NCBI RefSeq assembly: GCF_001194135.2
Contig: NC_068991.1
Coordinates: 32,019,609 to 32,083,608 of the forward strand
Source of the DNA: Octopus bimaculoides
Lineage: Eukaryota
DNA length: 64,000 bases
Direction of reading: 5' to 3'
Part shown: one piece after another, positions 9,801 through 42,564 of the stretch
Layout of the letters: each line of letters begins with the position of its first letter
How positions within the stretch are numbered: position 1 is the first letter of the stretch
Made by a program: the position numbers and the translations under genes
Notes under the pieces: generated by a model
Databases searched by the model: none
Seen by the model: the letters and a program-made list of their open reading frames with translations, nothing else
Told to the model about the DNA's origin: nothing

Positions 9801-11092
9801 TGGATTATATTCTTTGCATGATATTCATACAATGATTAAACTTGAGAGAGAAGTTGGATAAAATTAATGAGTTTTTTTTTAATATCTTGAGGATGTGTGC
9901 AATGTAACAGTATTTCTAATTATATAGTAGGTTTAATTACAAACTTAGTGTTACCTAGAAAACTATAAATGTTTATGAAAAAGAAAATGAAGAAATACTT
10001 GCAAGAAAGTGAGAGAGAGAGAGATGGGGGTAAAGAGGAGGAAAAAGAATTACCAAACATTTTTTACTGTGATTGCAAGAACACCATCATTGCAAAGAAT
10101 TAGGATCAATTATTATTTAGTTCCAGTGACTTAATAACAGTACACTTGGATATAACAAATTATATGTATAAAAAAAAGGGGGGGGGGCAGGTTAATTGAA
10201 GGGCCACAAAATTGAGAGCAAGATGTGAAGCCAAAGTGGAAAATAAATTAATACTATACAAATAAATAACAGTGTGAATATTTATATATANNNNNNNNNN
10301 NNNATATATATATATATATAGTCACGTATATATGTATAAGATAAAATCTTTATTTTAAAAAAGGAACGAAACTTTAATCCACATTCTGTGCAGGGTGATA
10401 TGAATATGAATAAAGGATTATAACCGTAAATTGTGATTTGTAAGAAACAGTTACAGAAAGGAAGATGGTGAAGGCATTAATGTCAAGTATTTATTCCAAT
10501 TCTCTTTAATTGCTAGGATGTCTAACAAAAAAGTCTCTGCCTAGATATACAACATTTGGTGTTTGGGTTTTCAAAGTATTGTTATTCATAACCTAATTAA
10601 TAATAATAATTATAGATAGGTGAGCCAAGTGACGAAACAGTTTATTTTGCACAGACAAGATTTCTGTCTAGGGGCACCACCAATTCTGATAATTCTTGAG
10701 AAAGAAAAAGTGAAAAAGTGAGAGAAAGAGAAAACTGGATTAAAATATTTTGAACAGAATCAACAACACAGTCTTGAGAAGAATTGTGTGTGTGTATGTA
10801 TGTATGTATATATATATATGTGTGTGTGTGTTTGTGTATGAGTGTAAAACGAGTAGTTTATTTTTTTCTCTTTTTTTGAAATGAGAAAAATGATAAAAAA
10901 AAAAATTTAAAAGAAAATTTAACAAGGATTTATTTTGACAGTTTTGTATTTCAATAATTCTTTGCTGCTGTTGTTGTTTAAAAGAAGAAAATTGTTGATG
11001 TTTTCTTGGCCAAACACTCACATATTAGCATGGAACATAGAGTTGCTGAGATCTTCAACAGATTAACAGAAGCTTTAAGAAAAACAGTTGCT

Positions 11093-11141
11093 TTACTGAG
11101 CTTTGGCCTTCTTTTTCAGGAATGGCAACTTGGATTGGACC
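11093..11141 (-). CDS. RTN: Reticulon terminal coding exon: VQSKLPFLKKKAKAQ*
   Basis: Acceptor tatcttgcacag, phase 2. Resembles the vertebrate RTN4 end IQAKIPGLKRKAE. Ends in a KxKxx di-lysine motif, TAA at 11095-11093. Confidence 0.93.
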
Positions 11142-12048
11142 CTGTGCAAGATAAATGGTAAACAAAAACGTTGTATTTACAGATAACAAAATTGTATAGA
11201 TGTGAAAATGTAGGCCAATCTAGTCAAAACTGAAAACCCTCTTAGCTATAACAATATACATTAATATTATCACACACACACATTAACTGCTATTTCTTAC
11301 ACAAGCGCAAGAAATGAAAAGTGAGAATTTTCAAGCTCTCCTTTGGTCATTATGTGTTATAAAAACAACTGTTCCTTGACTACTCCCATGCAAATATATT
11401 GTATTCACACTGGGCATTTTTGTGTGGCTAAGAAGTTCATTTTCAACCATGTAGTTTCAAGTTCAGTTCTACTGCGAGGTATTGTGGGAAAATGCCCTCT
11501 ACAGTGAATACAACATGGGCTTCTTTCAGTTTCTGTCTACTATATCCCTCACAAAACTTTGGTTGAACCAAGGTTATAGAAGGCACATGCCCAAGGTGTC
11601 ATACAGTGGGGCTGAACCCAGAACAATGTGGTTGGGCAGCAAGCTTCTTACCATACAAACAAATCCACATGTTCATAAAGCTCCAGGTCAGCTGTGATTC
11701 AGTAAGAAACTAACAATAGTCTACGCAGGCATAAAATAACATTTGTAAAATAAGCTAAGTTTAAACAAAGTGGAGGCTTGTGAGAGGGATCTCCTTAGAA
11801 AATAGTCAAAATCAAAACCTTCAAAGAAGAACCATGGCTAAAACATTAAAATTCTTGTCTTCCTGGACAAACTTATCTTATTTTACACACACACACACTC
11901 CCAGTAGTGTGGATTGATCAGGTCTGCTATACAGCATCTTTTCATACATCTTAAGCCTACAGCATCTTAACTGAGATTCAACTTTCAAATGTTTGATCTA
12001 ATAACATCTTTCAAAATTTTTAACTTCCTATACATCACCTACACTTTA

Positions 12049-13277
12049 TGAGGGGTGTTCATTAAAAATTTCCCCTGACTCACTTCGGTTATTGCAGGAA
12101 ACAAAACTTGTACAGGTATATTCAAACATGTCTCTACATGTCATATGAATTGCAGCTTTCCACTAGTATCTGTTTGTCTTTTACGGCTGCTGAAGTGGAC
12201 TAAGGTGTTATAATGGAGGCAGTTGAATGCAGATCAGTGATCAGGTTCTTATTCTTGACAAGTTGTACACCAAAAGAGACTTTCAATGAGATGAAAGAAG
12301 TTTATGGTGACGATGCGTCACCAACTCAAATGTGGTTGAACATCGGTGGAAACTGTTCCTATTCCACCACTGATAATGACACCATCCATAAAGTGGAAGT
12401 CGCTATTTTGGAGGATCATTCGGCAACTATCCCAGGAAGTGAAGATAAGTGTAGGGTCCATAGAGAAAGTCATTCACGACCATTTGCGCATACAGAAGTT
12501 GGCTGTACGATGGATTACCCAGATGCTCACACCTTTAGAGAAGCAGGAATGAGTCAATTACTCTTAGGCTCTTTAGGCGATGTGTCGAGAAAATGAGGAG
12601 AACTTTTTTGGCAGACTTATCACACAGGATGAAACATGGGTCCATCACTACAATCCTGAGGCTAAAGTCCAACTGAAGCAATGGAAGCATGATAACTCAC
12701 CACCTCCAAAGAAGGCTTATGTCCAACCCTCAGCAGGCAAGGTGATGCTCAGTCTTTTGGGGCTAGTGCAGAGTAGTGATGATGGATTTTCTGGCAAAGG
12801 GCAGCACACTTAACAGAGCATATTATGCTTCTCTGCTGCAGAAATTGCGGGACACCATCAAAGCAGAGAGGCATGGCATGCTGTTCAAAGGAGTTCACCT
12901 CCTCCAAGACAACATCCCAGTTTACAATGCGCATGTTGCCCAGATGAGAGCACACTCCTGCAACTATGAAATTTTTCTTCATCCCCTTCACTCTCCTGAT
13001 TTCACACCATCTAACTCCTACCTCTTTCCAGCCATGAAGTTGGTTTTGAAGGGGAAGCACTTTTCAGATGATGAACTGATTTCTGAGGTAAAGTCTTGAC
13101 TCCAGATGCAACCTACCAGCTTCTACAGACGAGGTCTTCACAGCTATATAAACTGATGGGAGAAGTGTGTCACCATTGGTGGTAGCTATGTAGAGAAGGA
13201 CCAATAATTATGCCAAGTTTCGTTTATCCCAAACTTTGGGAAGTGGGTTAAGGGAAATCTTTAATGAACACTCCTCG
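12049..13277 (+). mobile_element. Near full-length (1229 bp) inactive mariner (Tc1/mariner) DNA transposon
   Basis: About 38-bp TIRs (tgaggggtgttcattaaaaatttcccctgactcacttc and reverse complement cgaggagtgttcattaaagatttcccttaacccacttc) with TA on both sides. Transposase pieces ITQDETWVHHY, LLQDNIP and HSPDFTPS.SYLFP lie in several frames. Confidence 0.93.
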
Positions 13278-13373
13278 TATTGCTCTTGTGAATTGTACAT
13301 CATCTATGAGAACATTATTTCATGCATTACTCCCTTTTAAATAAATACTTCACACAATAGTTAGTATACTTAC

Positions 13374-13380
13374 CAAAACT
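13374..13380 (-). other. Candidate 7-nt frameshifting microexon (AGTTTTG)
   Basis: ccaatttctctttctag acceptor, TTG|gtaagt donor. TGCATG (RBFOX-type motif) about 48 nt downstream at 13326-13321. Confidence 0.45.
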
Positions 13381-13404
13381 CTAGAAAGAGAAATTGGTGT
13401 AAAA

Positions 13405-13530
13405 ATTAATGTAGAATATAGGGGCATGTAGTATATTAATGGGGAACATAAGGACAAATAGAGTTAATGTTGAATAAAGGGACAAGTAGCATTAATATAG
13501 AATATAGGGATATGTACAGCAGTTAATGAC
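13405..13530. repeat. Diverged ~28-bp minisatellite (about 4 copies) just upstream, in transcript sense, of the 7-nt microexon acceptor
   Basis: Recurring ttaatgtagaatataggg / ttaatgttgaataaaggg / ttaatatagaatataggg unit. Confidence 0.65.
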
Positions 13531-15056
13531 ACCACAGCCAACAAATCTTACAACAAATGTCAATTGTGAGGGAATAAAAACATTTTGAATTTGTTAACAC
13601 TGAGAAGTTGTCTTGTGAAAGATGTTAATGTTGGTAATGAGAACATATGGTGGAGGAGAAGAACTATTGTTTCACTGTATAAAAAGTAATATATCTGAAG
13701 AAAGGATGGAGTTAGGAGTTGTGGGTCAATGTCGGTTGTACAGATATGATCAGACAGTTCAGTAATAATTATTCCTGTCTAGGACTACAATATTTATTTT
13801 GCTCTTTCCATTTTTAAGATGGTGGATGTAATCTTAGTGAGATTTAGTTGCTACTTGTAGCAGATCAAATGAACATACACAGGTTGGATTGTTTAGCCTT
13901 GGTCAAACTGAATTGAGAATATGTATCAGACACGCTTACTGTGACTATCCTATCTTGAGAGACAGAACAACTTATCTTCTTCAAGATAAAGAGGTGTGAT
14001 TTAAAGGCGATTTGGCTGCTATTTCTAGCAGATTGAGTTACTTAAAGTAATGAACAAGATAACTAAGGTCACATGACAACTTTTAATGAATCTTCAGCCA
14101 TTTGGAAACAAAAGGATTCCATGCAGAAGTGTGATGTTGAATGATAGGAAGCTGTATGATTGGTTGGAAGGAAGGAAGTTGAATATACTTGTTTGGTTGT
14201 GCAATATTAAATAATTTAGTGGACAGAAAATAACAGAGGTAAAAAAAAAAAAAAAAAATGGAAGAGAAACATCAAGACAGGTTTGGGAAGAAATATTAAA
14301 ACAATTATGAATCTTGATTATCTAAATTAATGAAAAATTGTTGATAAAATTATAATTTTTCTAACTTTAGAGATCAAGGGTGTTTTAATATTTACATTAC
14401 AGTTCAATCAGTTTGATCTGATTGAAATGTAATGCAGATGAAAATACTGAAAAATCTTTCAATAGTCTTAAAAATTAACTTAGAATTTAACTTTTGTTAA
14501 TAAACAATTTAAAGAAAAGAAAGAAATAACCCAGCCACCAACCACCTCCTCATGTACTTTTGCTTTTATTATAAAAGATTAAATAAAAAAAGAAGCAAAC
14601 TAAATAGAAAGACCAATGAATAGAAGAACAAGGAAAAATTATGAAAATTATTGGTTTATGGTCATTGTTTGTGTTGGACAACATAAATTAAGACACTAAT
14701 TACATTAGGTAATGAAGGATTCACAATCTAACTATTTTACATATACATGCTCATATTCTTAATTAACTCAATACAAGTCAGAAGAATAGAAAAGTGAAAG
14801 TTAATCTAACATTGCAGTTAGCTCTAGTTACAAAAGTAGGCTAAGAAAGTTTCAGTGACTTTCTGATTAAGGCCAACCCTGTCTTTTCTTATTGACAAAT
14901 GACAGTAGTGCAGAGGAGTTTGTAGTCAAGAATTTGACTATGTCAAGTCTTTCAGGTTTATAGTAACACTTTGCCCTATTTCAGAAGCATGAAACAAGAA
15001 TTCTTCAGGTTTAAACAGAGCTCTATTACCATTTACTGGATTGTTAACAGGCATAC

Positions 15057-15061
15057 ATTGA
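15057..15061 (-). other. Candidate 5-nt microexon (TCAAT)
   Basis: atatttgtgtttcag acceptor and a weaker AAT|gtatgc donor. Frameshifting on its own. Confidence 0.25.
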
Positions 15062-15249
15062 CTGAAACACAAATATGTTCACTCTTTTAAACTATGTTAT
15101 ATTGAAACAAGAGAGTCTAAATCATTAAAACTATGTAAAAATTCTAATAAAAGCAATTATGTAACAATCAATACTCCATAATCACTCAATAATTTTGGGA
15201 GTGAGTCAATAATGGAGTACCAAAGTGGTTGCTTAACCCGCTAGAAATA

Positions 15250-15600
15250 GCAGCTAAATCCCTTTCAAAGTATACACTCTCGACTCCGTCAGTCGTGATT
15301 GACTATGGGTGCATCTAAGAGGTTCCTCTCCAAGGTACAAGTCTGAGTGGAAAATTGCCTCACCGGTGAACACAACCTTGGGTTGTTTTTATGGAAGACC
15401 AGCAGTTGCCCATGCATACCAACCACCCCTCTCCATGCCACTGATGTTATCCAAGGGAAAGGCAAAGGCCGATACAGCTTGGCACCAGTGACGTTGCAAC
15501 TCATTTCTGTGGCTGAGTGAACAGGAGCAACGTGTCTTGTTCAAGAACACAACACACAGCCTGGTCCAGGAATCAAACTCACAACTTCACGATTGTAAGC
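15250..15600 (-). mobile_element. SINE-like repeat
   Basis: The reverse strand has a tRNA-like head (gtgagtttgattcctgg) followed by the tgtgttcttgaacaagacac core seen in many metazoan SINEs. Boundaries approximate. Confidence 0.55.
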
Positions 15601-15865
15601 TCATCTTTAAAAAAGAGGAATATATTAGATAAGTGAGTTTTCAACCATTTTTTACCTATGGACTCCTTTGATCATTATTTTATTCTGGTTGACCCCCATG
15701 GCCATTTTATGTTTAAAAACCATTTTATTGATACTTCTTTCAAAATTTCTATTTTGCTTTTCACCCATTCACTTGTGTTGGTTTGCAATAGCACCCACTG
15801 AAAGAACATGTTTCAGTGGTTGGAAACATGTTAAAATATGTAAAACATTAGAGAAAGAAACATAG

Positions 15866-17970
15866 GCTTAGGGAAAGCCCCCGGCCCATCAGGAATCTCT
15901 GCAGAGATGCTCAAAATATCTGGCAGTGTCGGCTATAGCCTAGTCACCCGTATTGTTAACCAGGTGATACATGAAGGAGTCATACCCAATGACTGGTGTA
16001 GCAGCACCATAGTCAACTGCTACAAAGGTAAAGGTGACGCTTTAGATACAAATAATTACAGAGGTATCAAGTTGTTAGATCAGGTAATGAAAGTCACGGA
16101 GAGGGTCATAGCCCAACTAATTAGGGAGAGAGTCAATTTAGATGAGATGCAGTTTGGATTTGTGCCAGGGAAAAGCACCACTGATGCTATATTTCTGGTA
16201 AGACAGCTGCAGGAGAAANNNNNNNNNNNNNNNNNNNNNNNNNNNNNNNNNNNNNNNNNNNNNNNNNNNNNNNNNNNNNNNNNNNNNNNNNNNNNNNNNN
16301 NNNNNNNNNNNNNNNNNNNNNNNNNNNNNNNNNNNNNNNNNNNNNNNNNNNNNNNNNNNNNNNNNNNNNNNNNNNNNNNCCTCCTATTTATCATAGTCCT
16401 CCAGGCGATAACGGAGGAATTCAAGACAGGATGCCCCTGGGAGCTCCTCTATACTGATGACCTTGCGCTAATTGCTGAGTCACTATCAGAACTAGAGGAG
16501 AAGTTCAGGTGTGGGAGCAAGGACTAGAATCGAAGGGCCTTAGAGTCAACTTAGCTAAAACCAAAGTCCTAATAAGTAGGAAGGTAGACAAAACACAAAC
16601 CCCTTCAGGTAGATAGCCTTGCTTGATCTGGAGAAAAGGCGTAGGTAGAAACTCTATAAGATGTACCCAGTGCAAGCTATGGACACATAAGAAGTGCAGC
16701 ATTATCAAAAGAAGGTTAACTAGGAAGTTAGTTTTTGAATGTGGCAGATGTTCAGGAGCAATAAACACTGAAAATGTGCAGAAAACAACTTTGGCCATAT
16801 TCCATGGAGAAAAACTAGATGTAGTTGATAACTTCCGCTATCTAGGAGACTAAGTTAATAGTGGGGGAGGGTGCGCTGAGAGTGTAGCTGCTAGAATAAG
16901 AATAGCCTGGGTAACGTTCAGAGAGCTCTTACCTCTGCTGGTGACAAGGGGCCTCTCACTCAGAGTAAAAGGCAGACTGTATGACGCATGTGTAGGAACA
17001 ACCATGTTTCATGGCAGTGAAACATGGGCCGTGACTGTGGAGGACATGCGTAGGCTCGCAAGGAATGAAGCCAGCATGCTCCGATGGATGTGTAATGTCA
17101 GTGTGCATACTAGACAGAGTGTAAGTACTTTGAGAGAAAAGTTGAACCTAAGAAGCAAGCATCAGTTGTAGTGTGCAACAGAGATGATTGTGCTGGTATG
17201 ATCATGTGGCGAGAATGGATGAGAATAGCTGTGTGAAAAAGTGCCACACCCTAGAAGTTGAGGGAACCTGTGGAAGAGATCCTGGGATGAGGTGGTGAGG
17301 CACAACCTTCGAACATTGGGCCTCACCGAGGCGATGACTTCTGACCGAGACCTTTGGAAATATGCTGTGCGTGAAAAGACCCAGCAAGCCAAGTGAGACC
17401 TAAATCCAAGGCCTCTGCCAGGGGTGTAGCCAGCCCACTTATGCGTACCTTGCTTTATTGGACACTAAACTCCACTTGCGAAGACCTGTTGAGGCAAGTG
17501 AAATCGGAATCGAACTAAATTCGATGACTAGCACCCATGCCAACGTTGTCTCCTTCATTGGACACGAAACTCGGCTTGCGAAGACCTGTTGGGGCAAGTG
17601 AAAGCAAAATCATGATGGCACCTGTGCCCAGAGTCGCCTTCCTGGTACTTGTGCCGGTGGCACGTGTAAAGACATTTGAGTGAGATCGTCGCCAGTGCCG
17701 CTTGACTGGCTCGTGTGCAGGTGGCACGTAAAATACACCACTTTGAGCGTGGCTGTTGCCAGTACCACCTGACTGGCCTTCATGCCGGTAGCACATAAAA
17801 GCACCCACTACACTCGGAGTGGTTGGCCTTAGGAAGGGCATCTAGCTTTAGAAACACTGCCAAATCAGATTGGAGCCTGGTGTAACCATCTGGTTCACCA
17901 GTCCTCGGTCAAATCGTCCAACCCATGCTAGCATGGAAAGCGGACGTTAAATGATGATGATGATGATGAT
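15866..17970 (+). mobile_element. 5'-truncated, decayed RTE-clade LINE: reverse transcriptase, C-terminal region, long GC-richer 3' end, (GAT)n tail
   Basis: KAPGPSGI, NYRGIKLL, QFGFVPGKSTTDAIF, LLYTDDL and HGSETW motifs across ORFs 15907-16527, 16623-16853 and 16941-17171. The tail ends gttaaat(gat)n. Confidence 0.9.
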
Positions 17971-18735
17971 GAAAGCAAAATTGTTTTCATAAACACTTAA
18001 AATTCTATTCTGGATTCCCAATTTATTATTTTGCTGGTTTGGGCTCCATAAAATCTTATATGGACCCTGGTTGAGAACCGCTGAATTAGAATTTTTTCTG
18101 GGTGGGGGAAGAAAACCCAAACAAAAAGCGACCTTTTAACTAAACTTGAGTAGTGTCTAAAGTGTCTTAAAATCACAACTGCTTAATGTTTGGTTAATTA
18201 CTTTCTTTAATTTAATGTTCACAATAAGATCTAATTTGTTTCCATCCAGAACATACAGTGTGATTTTTTCTGCATAATGTGTGAATAAGTAAGGCTGTGA
18301 TGTTAAAATGTTCACACAGCAATCACATGGTTCCAAAATTGATTCCACTGTATGGTACTATAGGCAAGTGTTTTTTACCCTAGCCTTGCATAGAACAGAA
18401 ACTGTGTGAAAGCCATGTTGATAGGCTAAACCACTTTTGGGATGGTTACACTTGCTTTTACCATCCAGCCATTAATGAAGTCTCTTCTGTGTGCTGTGAG
18501 ATGTAACAGAACCAGCAGTTCCTCCTTCCACTCCCCACTCTCACAGGTACTTGCCATTTATCCCTTCACATCACATCCATCTCCTTCCTATTGACCTTTC
18601 AATATCCACTATGAAAACACAATGTTGACTATGAAAGCACAAACAATGACCACAGACGCAGAAATGGTACCTCAGAACCTTAAGAGCAAAAAATCAAGAA
18701 TAAAAATTTGAAATTGCTGAGGAAGCAAAAACTTA

Positions 18736-18741
18736 CCAAGG
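18736..18741 (-). CDS. Candidate 6-nt in-frame microexon (TCCTTG; LQQVQ becomes LQHPWVQ)
   Basis: About 60 nt of U-rich tract ending tatttcag, donor TTG|gtaagt. Frame-preserving. Confidence 0.5.
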
Positions 18742-19400
18742 ACTGAAATATCAAATATGATAAAAGATTAAAAAATATAAACAAATAAATAAATAAATTG
18801 GTGAAAATAAAATCAAAATATTCTAATTTTTGTTTTTAAAGTTTAATCAGGAAGAAGGGACTGTGGCCTATGACCTCCAGAGGTCAATGTAGTTATGTTC
18901 ACCTTGAATAAATCAAAGTTAGAGTTAAACACAGGTTGAGGATTGACAACACTGCAGATAAAAAGGATTGGGTTAATGTTGTACTTTGAGGCAGGGGAGA
19001 AGATTTGGGTGGTGGTAGTGAAGAGCAGAGACTATTTTAGTATCAGTGCAATAAGCACAGAGAGGAGACACAATGTGTCTATCAGATGTTGGTGAGTTGA
19101 TGCTAGTCAGTAGCAGCACTGACCCTCCTATATGTGGTAGAGAAGTAATCCACAGTTTTTTGTGAATCTGAGATTGTCAGAAGAGATCATTAATCATGGT
19201 GAAGTGGCATGTGTGAGAGCAATTGTCTGTAATTTAATGGAAAAATACTCTGAAAGTAAAGTACCTCTGAAATGTGAATATAAATAGAATAAAACAAGTT
19301 TCGCGTAAATCACATATGGGTTTTGTTTCCACAAATTTATGCAGTGGAAGCTGGAGTTATTGCCCTTTAACGTAAACACCTAGATAGTTTTGTTGGCATA

Positions 19401-20948
19401 CTCCACTGACTTTGTTGCCTCATAACTTCCAGAAAAATGGATACTTTTTAACAAAATTTTCAACAAATACCACTGTGGACTCGGAATTTTTTGGGATTTA
19501 TGGGAAAGAACTTTTCCGAGGGGTTGGGGAGAGGAGTTTCGGAAAATGGATTTCTTTTAATGAAATTTTATACAAATATCTTTATAATCGTAATCTATGC
19601 TGTTTGAAAGGTATTTGTATAAAATTTCATTAAAAGATATCCGTTTTCCTGAAAGTTATGAGNNNNNNNNNNNNNNNNNNNNNNNNNNNNNNNNNNNNNN
19701 NNNNNNNNNNNNNNNNNNNNNNNNNNNNNNNNNNNNNNNNNNNNNNNNNNNNNNNNNNNNNNNNNNNNNNNNNNNNNNNNNNNNNNNNNNNNNNNNNNNN
19801 NNNNNNNNNNNNNNNNNNNNNNNNNNNNNNNNNNNNNNNNNNNNNNNNNNNNNNNNNNNNNNNNNNNNNNNNNNNNNNNNNNNNNNNNNNNNNNNNNNNN
19901 NNNNNNNNNNNNNNNNNNNNNNNNNNNNNNNNNNNNNNNNNNNNNNNNNNNNNNNNNNNNNNNNNNNNNNNNNNNNNNNNNNNNNNNNNNNNNNNNNNNN
20001 NNNNNNNNNNNNNNNNNNNNNNNNNNNNNNNNNNNNNNNNNNNNNNNNNNNNNNNNNNNNNNNNNNNNNNNNNNNNNNNNNNNNNNNNNNNNNNNNNNNN
20101 NNNNNNNNNNNNNNNNNNNNNNNNNNNNNNNNNNNNNNNNNNNNNNNNNNNNNNNNNNNNNNNNNNNNNNNNNNNNNNNNNNNNNNNNNNNNNNNNNNNN
20201 NNNNNNNNNNNNNNNNNNNNNNNNNNNNNNNNNNNNNNNNNNNNNNNNNNNNNNNNNNNNNNNNNNNNNNNNNNNNNNNNNNNNNNNNNNNNNNNNNNNN
20301 NNNNNNNNNNNNNNNNNNNNNNNNNNNNNNNNNNNNNNNNNNNNNNNNNNNNNNNNNNNNNNNNNNNNNNNNNNNNNNNNNNNNNNNNNNNNNNNNNNNN
20401 NNNNNNNNNNNNNNNNNNNNNNNNNNNNNNNNNNNNNNNNNNNNNNATTGGTCTGGAGTGGAATGATGAATGATGAAGGGGTTGTACAAAAAAATTTTTT
20501 AAACATTTTTTCATAAAAAGATGTTCCCTGTCCACATCATTTCGAAGGCTGTGGTTAAAAAAAAATGGGAAAAATTCCCATCAACACGGAGTAGTTCCAA
20601 CTTATATGGTCTTCCTGATCCGAAACTCCATTTTTAAAATTCCTCTTCCCACCTCCTTGGAAAAACTTTTACATACAAATATCTTTATAATCGTAATCTA
20701 TGCTGTTTGAAAGGTATTTGTATAAAATTTCATTAAAAGATATCCGTTTTCCTGAAAGTTATGAGGATAAAAAGTTGGATTGTGTGAATTATCTGAAACT
20801 CCTCACCCTACACCCTCAAAAAAATTATTTCCCATAAATCCCTATTTACTCTGAATCCACAGTATCTAAGCAGTATTTGTTGAAAATTTTGTTAAAAAGC
20901 ATCCAATTTTCTGGAAGTTATGAAGTAACAAAATCGGGTGAGTGGGGG
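19401..20948. mobile_element. TA-flanked foldback/MITE-like element with long TIRs (central 19663-20446 is gap)
   Basis: Left end ...cataacttccagaaaaatggatactttttaacaaaattttcaacaaatac is the inverse of right end gtatttgttgaaaattttgttaaaaagcatccaattttctggaagttatg. Further nested inverted blocks lie inside. Confidence 0.7.
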
Positions 20949-21179
20949 TATACATCTATGTTTATACAGTATAGTATAAAACTATACTGATATATTCACT
21001 ACATAGTAAAAAAAACTGCTTAGATTATAATTTTATTAATATATAATTAGAATGTTCTTTTACCTCAATACTCCTTTATTAATACCAGTATATACCTATT
21101 AATCAATATTCACAGATACCATCTGATGAGTTAGTATTTAAGAGTACAATATGTATAAATATTAAACTATTTCTGAATA

Positions 21180-21960
21180 ATTTCTTTTCCTCCCTCAATT
21201 GTGGTAAAAGTTTGGTATATACTCAAAAGTATCCATAAATTTCTATCCTTTTGTTAATATATTCTTCTTAATAACCCTCTGAATAGCCATAAACTTTATC
21301 TATATACAATATAGCAACATTGTTTGAAAACATTTAACTTTAGTACTACATGATAAGACTTCCCCTGTTTCATTATCAATGGTCTGCTAGTAGGAAACTC
21401 CCTTAGTGGTCAGCCAACATCTTGTTTTAAGTTTTCCTTTACCAAACCTCATGATTTTTATGACTATACCAACTATGATTTCTGTCTGCTCTCTCAGCCC
21501 TACCCCTAACAGATAATGCCCATTATTCTTTCAGCCTTAGATATACAAGGTTTGATAAACTAGTCTATAAATTAAAACTGACTCCATATAAACAAATAAA
21601 ATCAGTGACAGGCAGAGTCTTCTTGACAATTTATTTATTAACTTCTATGCTGTAGTAGAGGCAACATGTTCTATGTCTATCTCCTCAACTTCTTGGAGAT
21701 TTTAGGTATAATTATACTAATGTATCCATCTGTTCTAATTTAAATGAATTCTATGTTTCTGTGCAGCTGAGGATTGCTCTGCATTTTAAATTGATGCAAT
21801 GATTGCATTGTTCAACGATCATGAAATGATCGTACTGCATTACCTCTGGATATCCTTGTTGATTATTTTGATTTTAATCACCTTACTTTGAAATTGTATG
21901 GATAATACCATACTAAATTCTGGTGCCTCAACTTAAGTATCATATTCACCTGAATCTAAA
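21180..21960 (+). mobile_element. Possible very decayed Penelope-like reverse transcriptase remnant
   Basis: One frame reads IINGLLVGNSLSGQPTSCF, reminiscent of the Penelope GL.MGNPLSG motif. Everything else is fragmentary. Confidence 0.3.
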
Positions 21961-22893
21961 TTTTTGCTGAATTCATCTACCATACCCAAAGTATATATAT
22001 ATGTATGTATATATATATATATATTTCTATGTACACATGTATATATATATGTATATATACATGTATATGTGTTATTCTTTCTCTCTCTCTCATACACTCA
22101 CACGCATGCGCGCACATGCACACACAGGTATTTGAGAAATAATGTTTAAAAGTGAGATTAACCGGAAATAACCAAAGTATTATTTTACAAATTGTGAGCA
22201 GACGATAGCTGTGTATATATATTTCTATATACGTGTGTGTGTACACAACACACACATGCTCACTCACTCACACACATGTATTTGACAAACATCATTTAAA
22301 AATGAGACTAACTGGAATTAACCAAAGTGTCATTTTACGAATTGTAAGCAGACGATAGCTTTTTAAAGCTACGCCAATGTTTTAGAATCATCTCACTTAT
22401 GCTTGATAACTATTAATCTCCGAACTCTCCCAAATAAGACATCTAAAGTCAACATTAAGGTGAAGTACATTTCTAAATTCTTTGTTAGACCCTCCAGTGT
22501 TCACATTGTCAGTTACCATTCTCTTCACGAAGAATCCATCTGAAGTTTAAGCTGGATGTACTAGAAATAGCAGCCAAATCCTTCCTGTGAGCGGACAATA
22601 TATTCAATAACGATAATAACTTAAATGGTATATATATATATATAACGATTGCTATGAAAGCAAACAATACAAATTCATTTAATTCCTAATAATATTTAAT
22701 TATAAAAATATAAAAGGATTCTTAAAACATTGAATGAGGGTCCAGCAAAAGAGAATAGGAAAGGGGTCTATAAGCAAAAAAAGGGTTTGAGAACTACTGC
22801 TACTTCTATTATAGCCTTGGGCTGACCAAAGCCTTGTCTTTTTATTAAAATAGAAAAAAGATCCATACAAGAACAGCAAGTTTCCAAACTTAC

Positions 22894-22911
22894 TGGATGG
22901 GAGAGACATTA
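22894..22911 (-). CDS. Candidate 18-nt in-frame microexon (TAATGTCTCTCCCATCCA; inserts HNVSPI)
   Basis: ctctttcatcttcag acceptor and CCA|gtaagt donor. Stop-free in phase 2. Confidence 0.45.
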
Positions 22912-23162
22912 CTGAAGATGAAAGAGAAGGAGGGGGAGAGGTTTTTCTATTTATGGTGAAGTGTCTTCAAGATTGTGAAACATTTCTCATACATCATTTC
23001 TGTTTATAACAAAGATGTGATGTTCTAAACTGTTCCAGTAAGATCATAATAAGATGTTGTTATGTGATCATAAGCACTGAAAGACATCGTAACATGGTCA
23101 CACAACTGCTAGAAAGGTGCCACATAGCATGATCATAACTACAAGGAAGACATCATTACATA

Positions 23163-23953
23163 TATGTAGGATTTTCGAGCGAGATCGTTGCCAGTGCCCC
23201 TGGACTGGCTCTTGTGCGGGTGACACACGAAATACACCATTTTGAGCGTGGCCGTTGCCAGTACCGCCTGACTGGCCTTGTAGGATTTTCGAGCGAGATC
23301 GTTGCCAGTGCACCTGGACTGGCTCTTGTGCAGGTGGCACATAAAATACACCATTTTGAGCGTGGCCGTTGCCAGTACCGCCTGACTGGCCTTGTAGGAT
23401 TTTCGAGCGAGATCGTTGCCAGTGCACCTGGACTNNNNNNNNNNNNNNNNNNNNNNNNNNNNNNNNNNNNNNNNNNNNNNNNNNNNNNNNNNNNNNNNNN
23501 NNNNNNNNNNNNNNNNNNNNNNNNNNNNNNNNCATATATGTAGGATTTTCGAGCGAGATCGTTGCCAGTGCCCCTGGACTGGCTCTTGTGCGGGTGACAC
23601 ACGAAATACACCATTTTGAGCGTGGCCGTTGCCAGTACCGCCTGACTGGCCTTGTAGGATTTTCGAGCGAGATCGTTGCCAGTGCACCTGGACTGGCTCT
23701 TGTGCAGGTGGCACATAAAATACACCATTTTGAGCGTGGCCGTTGCCAGTACTGCCTGACTGGCCTCCGTGCGGGTGACACATAAAAGCACCCACTACAC
23801 TCTCGGAGTGGTTGGCGTTAGGAAGGGCATCCAGCTGTAGAAACTCTGCCAAATCAGATTGGAGCCTGGTATAGCCATCTGGTTTCACCAGTCCTCAGTC
23901 AAATCGTTCAACCCATGCTAGCATGGAAAGCGGACGTTAAACGATGATGATGA
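23163..23953 (+). mobile_element. RTE 3'-end-derived repeat with internal 114-bp tandem units and (GAT)n tail
   Basis: Units start at 23166, 23280, 23394 and 23540, 23654. The last ~170 bp match 17800-17970. Confidence 0.85.
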
Positions 23954-23988
23954 CTCCTTGCCATTGCCAGGTAATTATCAATTTGAAC
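23951..23988 (-). pseudogene. Truncated duplicate of the 59-nt reticulon exon (38 nt, VQIDNYLAMARS) with a dead acceptor
   Basis: Near-identical to 24326-24289 plus flanking acceptor sequence. ttacAG has become ttacTG, and the copy is cut by the (GAT)n tail of an RTE-type insertion. Confidence 0.85.
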
Positions 23989-24109
23989 CAGTAACAGCAA
24001 AAACATATTTGTTATAAACAGAAATAATGTATGTGAAATGTTCCACAATCTTGAAGGCACTTCACCATAAATAAAAAAAAAAAAACCTCTCCCCCTTCTC
24101 TTTCATCAT

Positions 24110-42557: not shown

Positions 42558-42564
42558 ACTTACA

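Follow-up and report, generated by a model that had tools for sequence, protein, structure and literature searches.

The minus strand of a 64,000-nucleotide (nt) stretch of Octopus bimaculoides DNA (hereafter the window) carries the reticulon-1-A gene, and an earlier note on this sequence proposed that four microexons of 18, 7, 6 and 5 nt (c18, c7, c6 and c5) lie in its last intron and act together as a combinatorial switch for the C terminus of the protein. Our analysis makes it very probable that this intron holds one genuine alternative cassette microexon, c6, and that c18, c7 and c5 are most likely due to chance. The proposal of four exons stands for c6, which is found in public isoforms of two Octopus species and is conserved in Sepia, and is unsupported for the other three, for which neither conservation in Sepia nor, by exact look-up, a public isoform was found. 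What is left of the proposed switch is a single annotated toggle, from Gln to His-Pro-Trp (HPW), near the end of the probable C-terminal amphipathic helix, with the KxKxx motif intact. The HPW isoform is already known, being in UniProt and RefSeq; what is new is that c6 is conserved in cuttlefish and apparently lacking outside cephalopods.

The 6-nt exon in public isoforms

All four motifs were found on the minus strand of the last intron (24267-11142, 13,126 nt). The coordinates first noted for them are right for c18, c7 and c5 and one base off for c6, which lies at 18742-18737 and not at 18741-18736. With slashes marking exon borders, the candidates, their junctions and the elements around c6 are as follows.

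22911-22894, minus strand: c18, the 18-nt candidate, ...ctttcatcttcag/TAATGTCTCTCCCATCCA/gtaagt; in frame, adding HNVSPI
18742-18737, minus strand: c6, the 6-nt exon, tatttcag/TCCTTG/gtaagt; in phase 2, CA/G (Q) becomes CAT CCT TGG (H-P-W)
18743-18770, minus strand: acceptor region of c6, T-rich tract ...cttttatcatatttgatatttcag; no UGC; TCAG kept in Sepia
18726-18736, minus strand: donor of c6, GTAAGTTTTTG; identical in Sepia
18685-18698, minus strand: intronic block CTTGATTTTTTGCT, conserved in Sepia at 13 of 14 positions; situated 34-47 nt past the c6 donor
15061-15057, minus strand: c5, the 5-nt candidate, ...gtgtttcag/TCAAT/gtatgc; weak donor
13380-13374, minus strand: c7, the 7-nt candidate, ...ctctttctag/AGTTTTG/gtaagt; frameshifting
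Junction on inclusion of c6: ...TTGCAGCA/TCCTTG/GGTCCAATCC
Junction on inclusion of c18: ...GCAGCA/TAATGTCTC...
Junction on inclusion of c6 in Sepia: ...CAGCA/TCCATG/GGTGCAATC

Every translation listed in the earlier note (HNVSPI, HPW, a frameshifted tail, and HP, HQ and HQWSNPSCHS each followed by a stop) was reproduced. Hypothetical isoforms were then built and looked up by exact sequence in a protein collection. The c6 version of a 193-amino-acid UniProt model proved to be an exact public entry, A0A0L8HVA1, of 195 amino acids and ending ...NKILQHPWVQSKLPFLKKKAKAQ. Two more records share the HPW C terminus: XP_014769076.1, which is isoform X3 of an earlier O. bimaculoides RefSeq annotation, and XP_036363384.1, a reticulon-1 of 715 amino acids from O. 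sinensis, where the gene spans 166 kb. The skipped form is public too, in an RNA sequencing (RNA-seq) contig, in UniProt entry A0A0L8HVD6 and in isoforms X3-X5. With a length of 6 nt, the borders cag/TCCTTG/gtaagt and both included and skipped forms, c6 is a microexon by definition. The expectation that gene predictors would miss such exons is wrong for c6, which is present in one UniProt and two RefSeq (XP_) entries. With eight further N-terminal contexts, among them those of decapodiform transcripts (P0004-P0006) and of the Sepia protein, exact look-up of the HPW version gave no match. A literature search returned no discussion of the HPW isoform and no paper relevantly linking reticulon and microexons, and the main text of an octopus microexon preprint does not mention reticulon.

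Both fuller-length HPW models carry an N-terminal alternative exon, EQEPEV(S/N)VKDLHGYRL (proteins P0003, P0123, P0127 and P0129), which is also found with the skipped C terminus (X3, X4). N-terminal alternative exons of reticulon were not located within the 64-kb window.

Conservation of the 6-nt exon

In the cuttlefish Sepia (Acanthosepion) pharaonis, the ortholog (locus L001) has its penultimate exon (exon E) at 21877-21935 and its terminal exon (exon F) from 26325, separated by a gap-free intron of 4,389 nt. When the 13.1-kb octopus intron was aligned with this 4.4-kb intron, a check suggested in the earlier note, c6 was the top blastn match: TCAG/TCCTTG/GTAAGTTTTTG in octopus and TCAG/TCCATG/GTAAGTTTTTG in Sepia. 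The splice sites are the same in both species (cag/TCCATG/gtaagtttttg in Sepia), and the sole exonic difference, CCT to CCA, falls on the third base of the Pro codon and is synonymous, so that both exons encode His-Pro-Trp. The only octopus intron 20-mers that match the Sepia intron at 19 or more of 20 positions are those at c6 and in simple repeats, and when that intron was shuffled 2,000 times, a c6 probe never scored above 17/20, against 19/20 in the real one. c6 is the only non-repetitive conserved island between the two introns. Its ortholog is also the only GT[AG]AGT in the Sepia intron with an acceptor-like site (YAG, where Y is a pyrimidine, plus a pyrimidine tract) upstream.

Downstream of the exon, the block CTTG[A/G]TTTTTTGCT is present at equal spacing in octopus and Sepia (L001, about 22497-22510) and is a possible intronic splicing enhancer. 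c6 has persisted since the ancestor of octopus and cuttlefish, its splice sites and peptide unchanged. No in-frame microexon was found in the homologous introns of Lottia (406 nt), Capitella (about 70 nt) and Bradybaena (1,905 nt), and the skipped junction is present in 120 of 120 homologues outside Octopus among the matches listed. Because it is absent from the homologous intron in two gastropods and one annelid, c6 appears to be an addition of the cephalopod lineage.

Gene model and last intron

Reticulon exons were located on the minus strand by tblastn with a human RTN4 domain as the query. The assembled domain of 190 amino acids is 100% identical to A0A0L8HVD6, an O. bimaculoides reticulon, and 99% identical to RefSeq reticulon-1-A isoforms X4 and X5; the Pfam Reticulon domain (PF02453) was recognized in protein P0124 with E=4.8e-44 and 150.5 bits (cut-off 31.8). 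The Logan RNA-seq complementary DNA (cDNA) contig mentioned above (L002) matches the reticulon exons at 99-100% identity, in the following aligned blocks.

36181-35968, minus strand: block aligned to the cDNA
33779-33641, minus strand: block aligned to the cDNA
28830-28757, minus strand: block aligned to the cDNA
27661-27613, minus strand: block aligned to the cDNA, confirming the 47-nt exon
24328-24267, minus strand: block aligned to the cDNA (exon E)
11152-10808, minus strand: block aligned to the cDNA (terminal exon F)
24326-24268, minus strand: exon E, 59 nt, VQIDNYLAMARSQFNKILQ + CA; ends CAG CA, with donor CA/GTAAGA
10808-11141, minus strand: terminal exon F, coding at 11141-11093 (G GTC CAA ... 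KAKAQ stop), 3′ untranslated region at least to 10808

This transcript confirms the exon structure and the reading phase, and in it exon E is spliced straight to exon F. The last intron contains three runs of N (assembly gaps; 16219-16379, 19663-20446 and 23435-23532), each more than 900 nt from c6; they have no effect on the frame, which is set by the exon junctions confirmed in the cDNA. Neither the Rfam scan nor the tRNA scan of this intron gave a match.

Probable effect on the protein

The earlier note put the affected junction in the C-terminal helix of the reticulon domain, ahead of the KxKxx signal, and this placement holds: the junction falls towards the end of the predicted helix and before KAKAQ. 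When c6 is skipped the protein ends ...NKILQ-Q-VQSKLPFLKKKAKAQ; when it is included, that one Gln becomes His-Pro-Trp, a gain of two residues with the frame unchanged. The C-terminal di-lysine signal (KxKxx, in ...KKKAKAQ) is present in both forms, and the PFLKKKAKAQ tail is unaltered. In reticulons and REEPs, two hairpins are followed by an amphipathic helix that is required for curvature (PMC7835363, PMC7973432). AlphaFold models from a 27-sequence alignment, of low confidence (predicted local distance difference test (pLDDT) 67-70, predicted template modelling score (pTM) about 0.3), give the skipped form a continuous helix over residues 158-182; the equally low-confidence model of the HPW form has this helix broken at H178, with lower confidence there.

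The Pro-Trp insertion would probably break the amphipathic helix behind the second membrane hairpin in its final two turns, and the broken helix would sit differently on the membrane of the endoplasmic reticulum (ER). An exon of 6 nt is presumably too small for definition across itself; splicing of c6 probably relies on its GTAAGT donor, which fits the consensus, on the conserved U-run that follows this donor immediately and on the conserved block about 40 nt downstream. A conserved splice toggle within the C-terminal amphipathic helix would be a natural experiment on the part of the protein that is needed for curvature.

The 18-, 7- and 5-nt candidates and alternative explanations

On the sense strand of the last intron GTAAGT occurs, as claimed, three times and no more, and every copy is preceded by YAG and a pyrimidine-rich tract at 6-18 nt. 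A further claim, that other GTAAGT lack such an acceptor, holds at six of the seven non-exonic sense-strand sites elsewhere in the window, with the site at 42563 borderline. We compared the three with dinucleotide-preserving shuffles of the intron, a null count that the earlier note had also proposed. GTAAGT itself is not enriched (3 observed, 3.2 expected), and the count of those with a plain AG 3-20 nt upstream (3 observed; P(≥3)=0.37) is uninformative because 2.2 are expected by chance. Under a stricter criterion, YAG with at least 8 of 12 pyrimidines, set after the data had been seen, 3 are observed against 0.40 expected (P(≥3)=0.009). Once the real c6 is removed, the same criterion gives P(≥2)=0.059, so that c18 and c7 as a pair are barely above the shuffled-intron null. 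Such an acceptor window occurs at about 13% of last-intron positions and accompanies 6 of 60 GT[AG]AGT elsewhere in the window.

Counterparts of c18, c7 and c5 were not found in the Sepia intron, where their probes match no better than shuffled sequence: of 1,000 trials, 971 (c18), 991 (c7) and 170 (c5) reached the observed score. None of ten variant proteins (c18, c18 with c6, c7 and c5, on three N-terminal contexts) was in the collection by exact look-up, a weak negative. The surroundings of c18 and c7 are repetitive. The c18 pyrimidine tract is supplied by an intronic inverted repeat with these arms.

24003-24107, minus strand: 5′ arm of the inverted repeat, 105 nt
22917-23018, minus strand: 3′ arm of the inverted repeat, supplying the c18 pyrimidine tract

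The arm 23018-22917 matches 24107-24003, taken as reverse complement, at 86% identity, and their duplex is predicted at about -140 kcal/mol with 81% of the c18 pyrimidine tract paired; the tract ends the inverted copy and is therefore the reverse complement of a purine run. A pyrimidine-rich 28-nt minisatellite (13404-13510) is found a short way upstream of the c7 acceptor, and a decayed mariner-like element lies about 95 nt from this acceptor. We conclude that c18, c7 and c5 are most likely chance AG/GT juxtapositions in pyrimidine-rich, repeat-derived sequence, c18 being the least unlikely of these three unsupported candidates.

The alternative that survives best, which we nonetheless hold to be unlikely, is that octopus alone has recently gained c18, c7 or both as cassette exons, born from repeats and included at low or narrow levels, c6 being the old and conserved one. 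c18 does combine an excellent pyrimidine tract, a CAG acceptor and a CCA/GTAAGT donor with 18 nt open in frame, an acceptor window as strong as its own occurs at less than 1% of intron positions, and the two extra configurations together have P of about 0.06, by acceptor criteria picked after the data were viewed. Against it, neither candidate was found in a public isoform by exact look-up or is conserved in Sepia, c18 takes its tract from the reverse complement of a purine run and this tract is predicted to pair in a 105-nt stem, and c7 would shift the frame and delete the conserved PFLKKK/KxKxx tail. A bolder scenario, to which we give slightly less credence still, is that c6 is a coleoid innovation whose regulated, perhaps neural, inclusion kinks the reticulon helix, with the younger c18 and c7 adding octopus C termini, some of them without the ER retrieval signal. 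If this were true, neurons or other cells would gain a variant of an ER-tubule-shaping reticulon.

The switch as first proposed, in which all four candidates are used, alone and combined, to tune the helix or remove KxKxx by tissue, is very improbable. It can draw on the excess of GTAAGT with YAG and a pyrimidine tract (3 of 3, one of them real), and a scallop RefSeq isoform with a frameshifted C terminus at the same junction is a possible precedent for tail loss. Only c6 is conserved in Sepia, however, and only its variant turned up in the exact look-ups (0 of 10 for the others); annotation pipelines that catch a 6-nt exon should catch one of 18 nt more easily; the c5 donor is poor, and the products of c6 with c7 and of c5 with c7 lack the conserved tail. 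Because the other three are unconserved and absent in the look-ups, with c18 and c7 marginal against chance, the four-exon switch is unsupported. That the HPW isoform is an annotation artefact, for instance of misaligned reads, and c6 is never spliced in would fit a cDNA contig of the skipped form and inclusion known from annotated models, but is scarcely credible given the isoform in a UniProt entry and in RefSeq entries of two species, and an exon kept in Sepia with both splice sites and a synonymous change only, in an otherwise unalignable intron.

Several points nevertheless weigh against our preferred reading of one genuine microexon among four candidates. Inclusion of c6 rests on annotated isoform models; isoforms X1 and X2 of both NCBI annotations lie outside the comparison; for Sepia, the protein in the annotation skips c6; and exact look-up turned up no decapodiform transcript with HPW. 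The structure models are of low confidence, and the three intronic N runs could conceal further exons. The splice sites of c18 are very good and its 18 nt are in frame and free of stops; it shares with c7 a P of about 0.06 and may see low-level or lineage-specific use.

Repeats in the last intron

At 23951-23989 on the minus strand lies a dead partial duplicate of exon E, 95% identical to the cDNA; its acceptor is mutated from ACAG to ACTG, and the copy is truncated by an insertion resembling a short interspersed nuclear element (TCATCATCGTTTAACGTCC...). This pseudo-exon and a repeat array are enclosed by the inverted repeat 24003-24107/22917-23018, which could form long double-stranded RNA in the pre-mRNA, a type of substrate that is edited by ADAR in cephalopods. 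A 114-nt tandem repeat (23165-23766; 94-96% matches) flanks the gap at 23435-23532, which probably falls within the array. The mariner-like transposon, on the plus strand at about 12047-13279, has 40-nt terminal inverted repeats (13240-13279 and 12086-12047), frameshifted open reading frames and weak Pfam matches to HTH_48 and Transposase_1.

Comparison with known systems

Animal microexons are cassette exons of 3-27 nt, reportedly described by Irimia et al. 2014, for example. c6 resembles them in its 6-nt length, preserved frame, conserved flanking intron and consensus donor, and in changing a few surface residues beside a functional element. It differs from typical cases in lying in the presumed amphipathic helix of a membrane-shaping protein, not in a signalling or interaction domain, and in having no UGC near its acceptor. 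Neural microexons that depend on SRRM3/4 (eMIC) are marked by a UGC motif shortly before their 3′ splice site. c6 has none: in agreement with the earlier note, none of the four acceptors has TGC within the preceding 40 nt, and none precedes the acceptor of the Sepia c6 ortholog.

Recursive splice sites are AG/GTAAGT ratchet points in long introns, with acceptor and donor directly abutting. The octopus candidates share with them an acceptor shortly before a consensus GTAAGT in a long intron. We rejected recursive splicing because the sites are not juxtaposed, AG and GT being 5-18 nt apart in every candidate; c6 is, moreover, retained in the mature mRNA.

To our knowledge, described reticulon isoforms (vertebrate RTN1-4, fly Rtnl1) vary at the N terminus through alternative promoters and exons. 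The octopus variation, unlike theirs, falls within the conserved C-terminal helix region. The octopus protein otherwise follows the family in its reticulon homology domain and its di-lysine tail, and would share the family's two hairpins and amphipathic helix (PMC7835363, PMC7973432). Alternative splicing at the homologous last junction is annotated in a reticulon-1-A-like protein of the scallop Pecten maximus (isoform X4, P0074). Its C terminus, ...GVMNKCRLKYRS followed by a stop, would fit a frameshifted terminal exon from CRLKYRS onward, as judged from protein sequences only, and leaves the preceding Asn-Lys unexplained; this would be splicing at the same junction that removes the scallop di-lysine tail. 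The scallop tail is frameshifted and truncated (...NKCRLKYRS, stop) and has no KxKxx, whereas the octopus protein gains two residues in frame.

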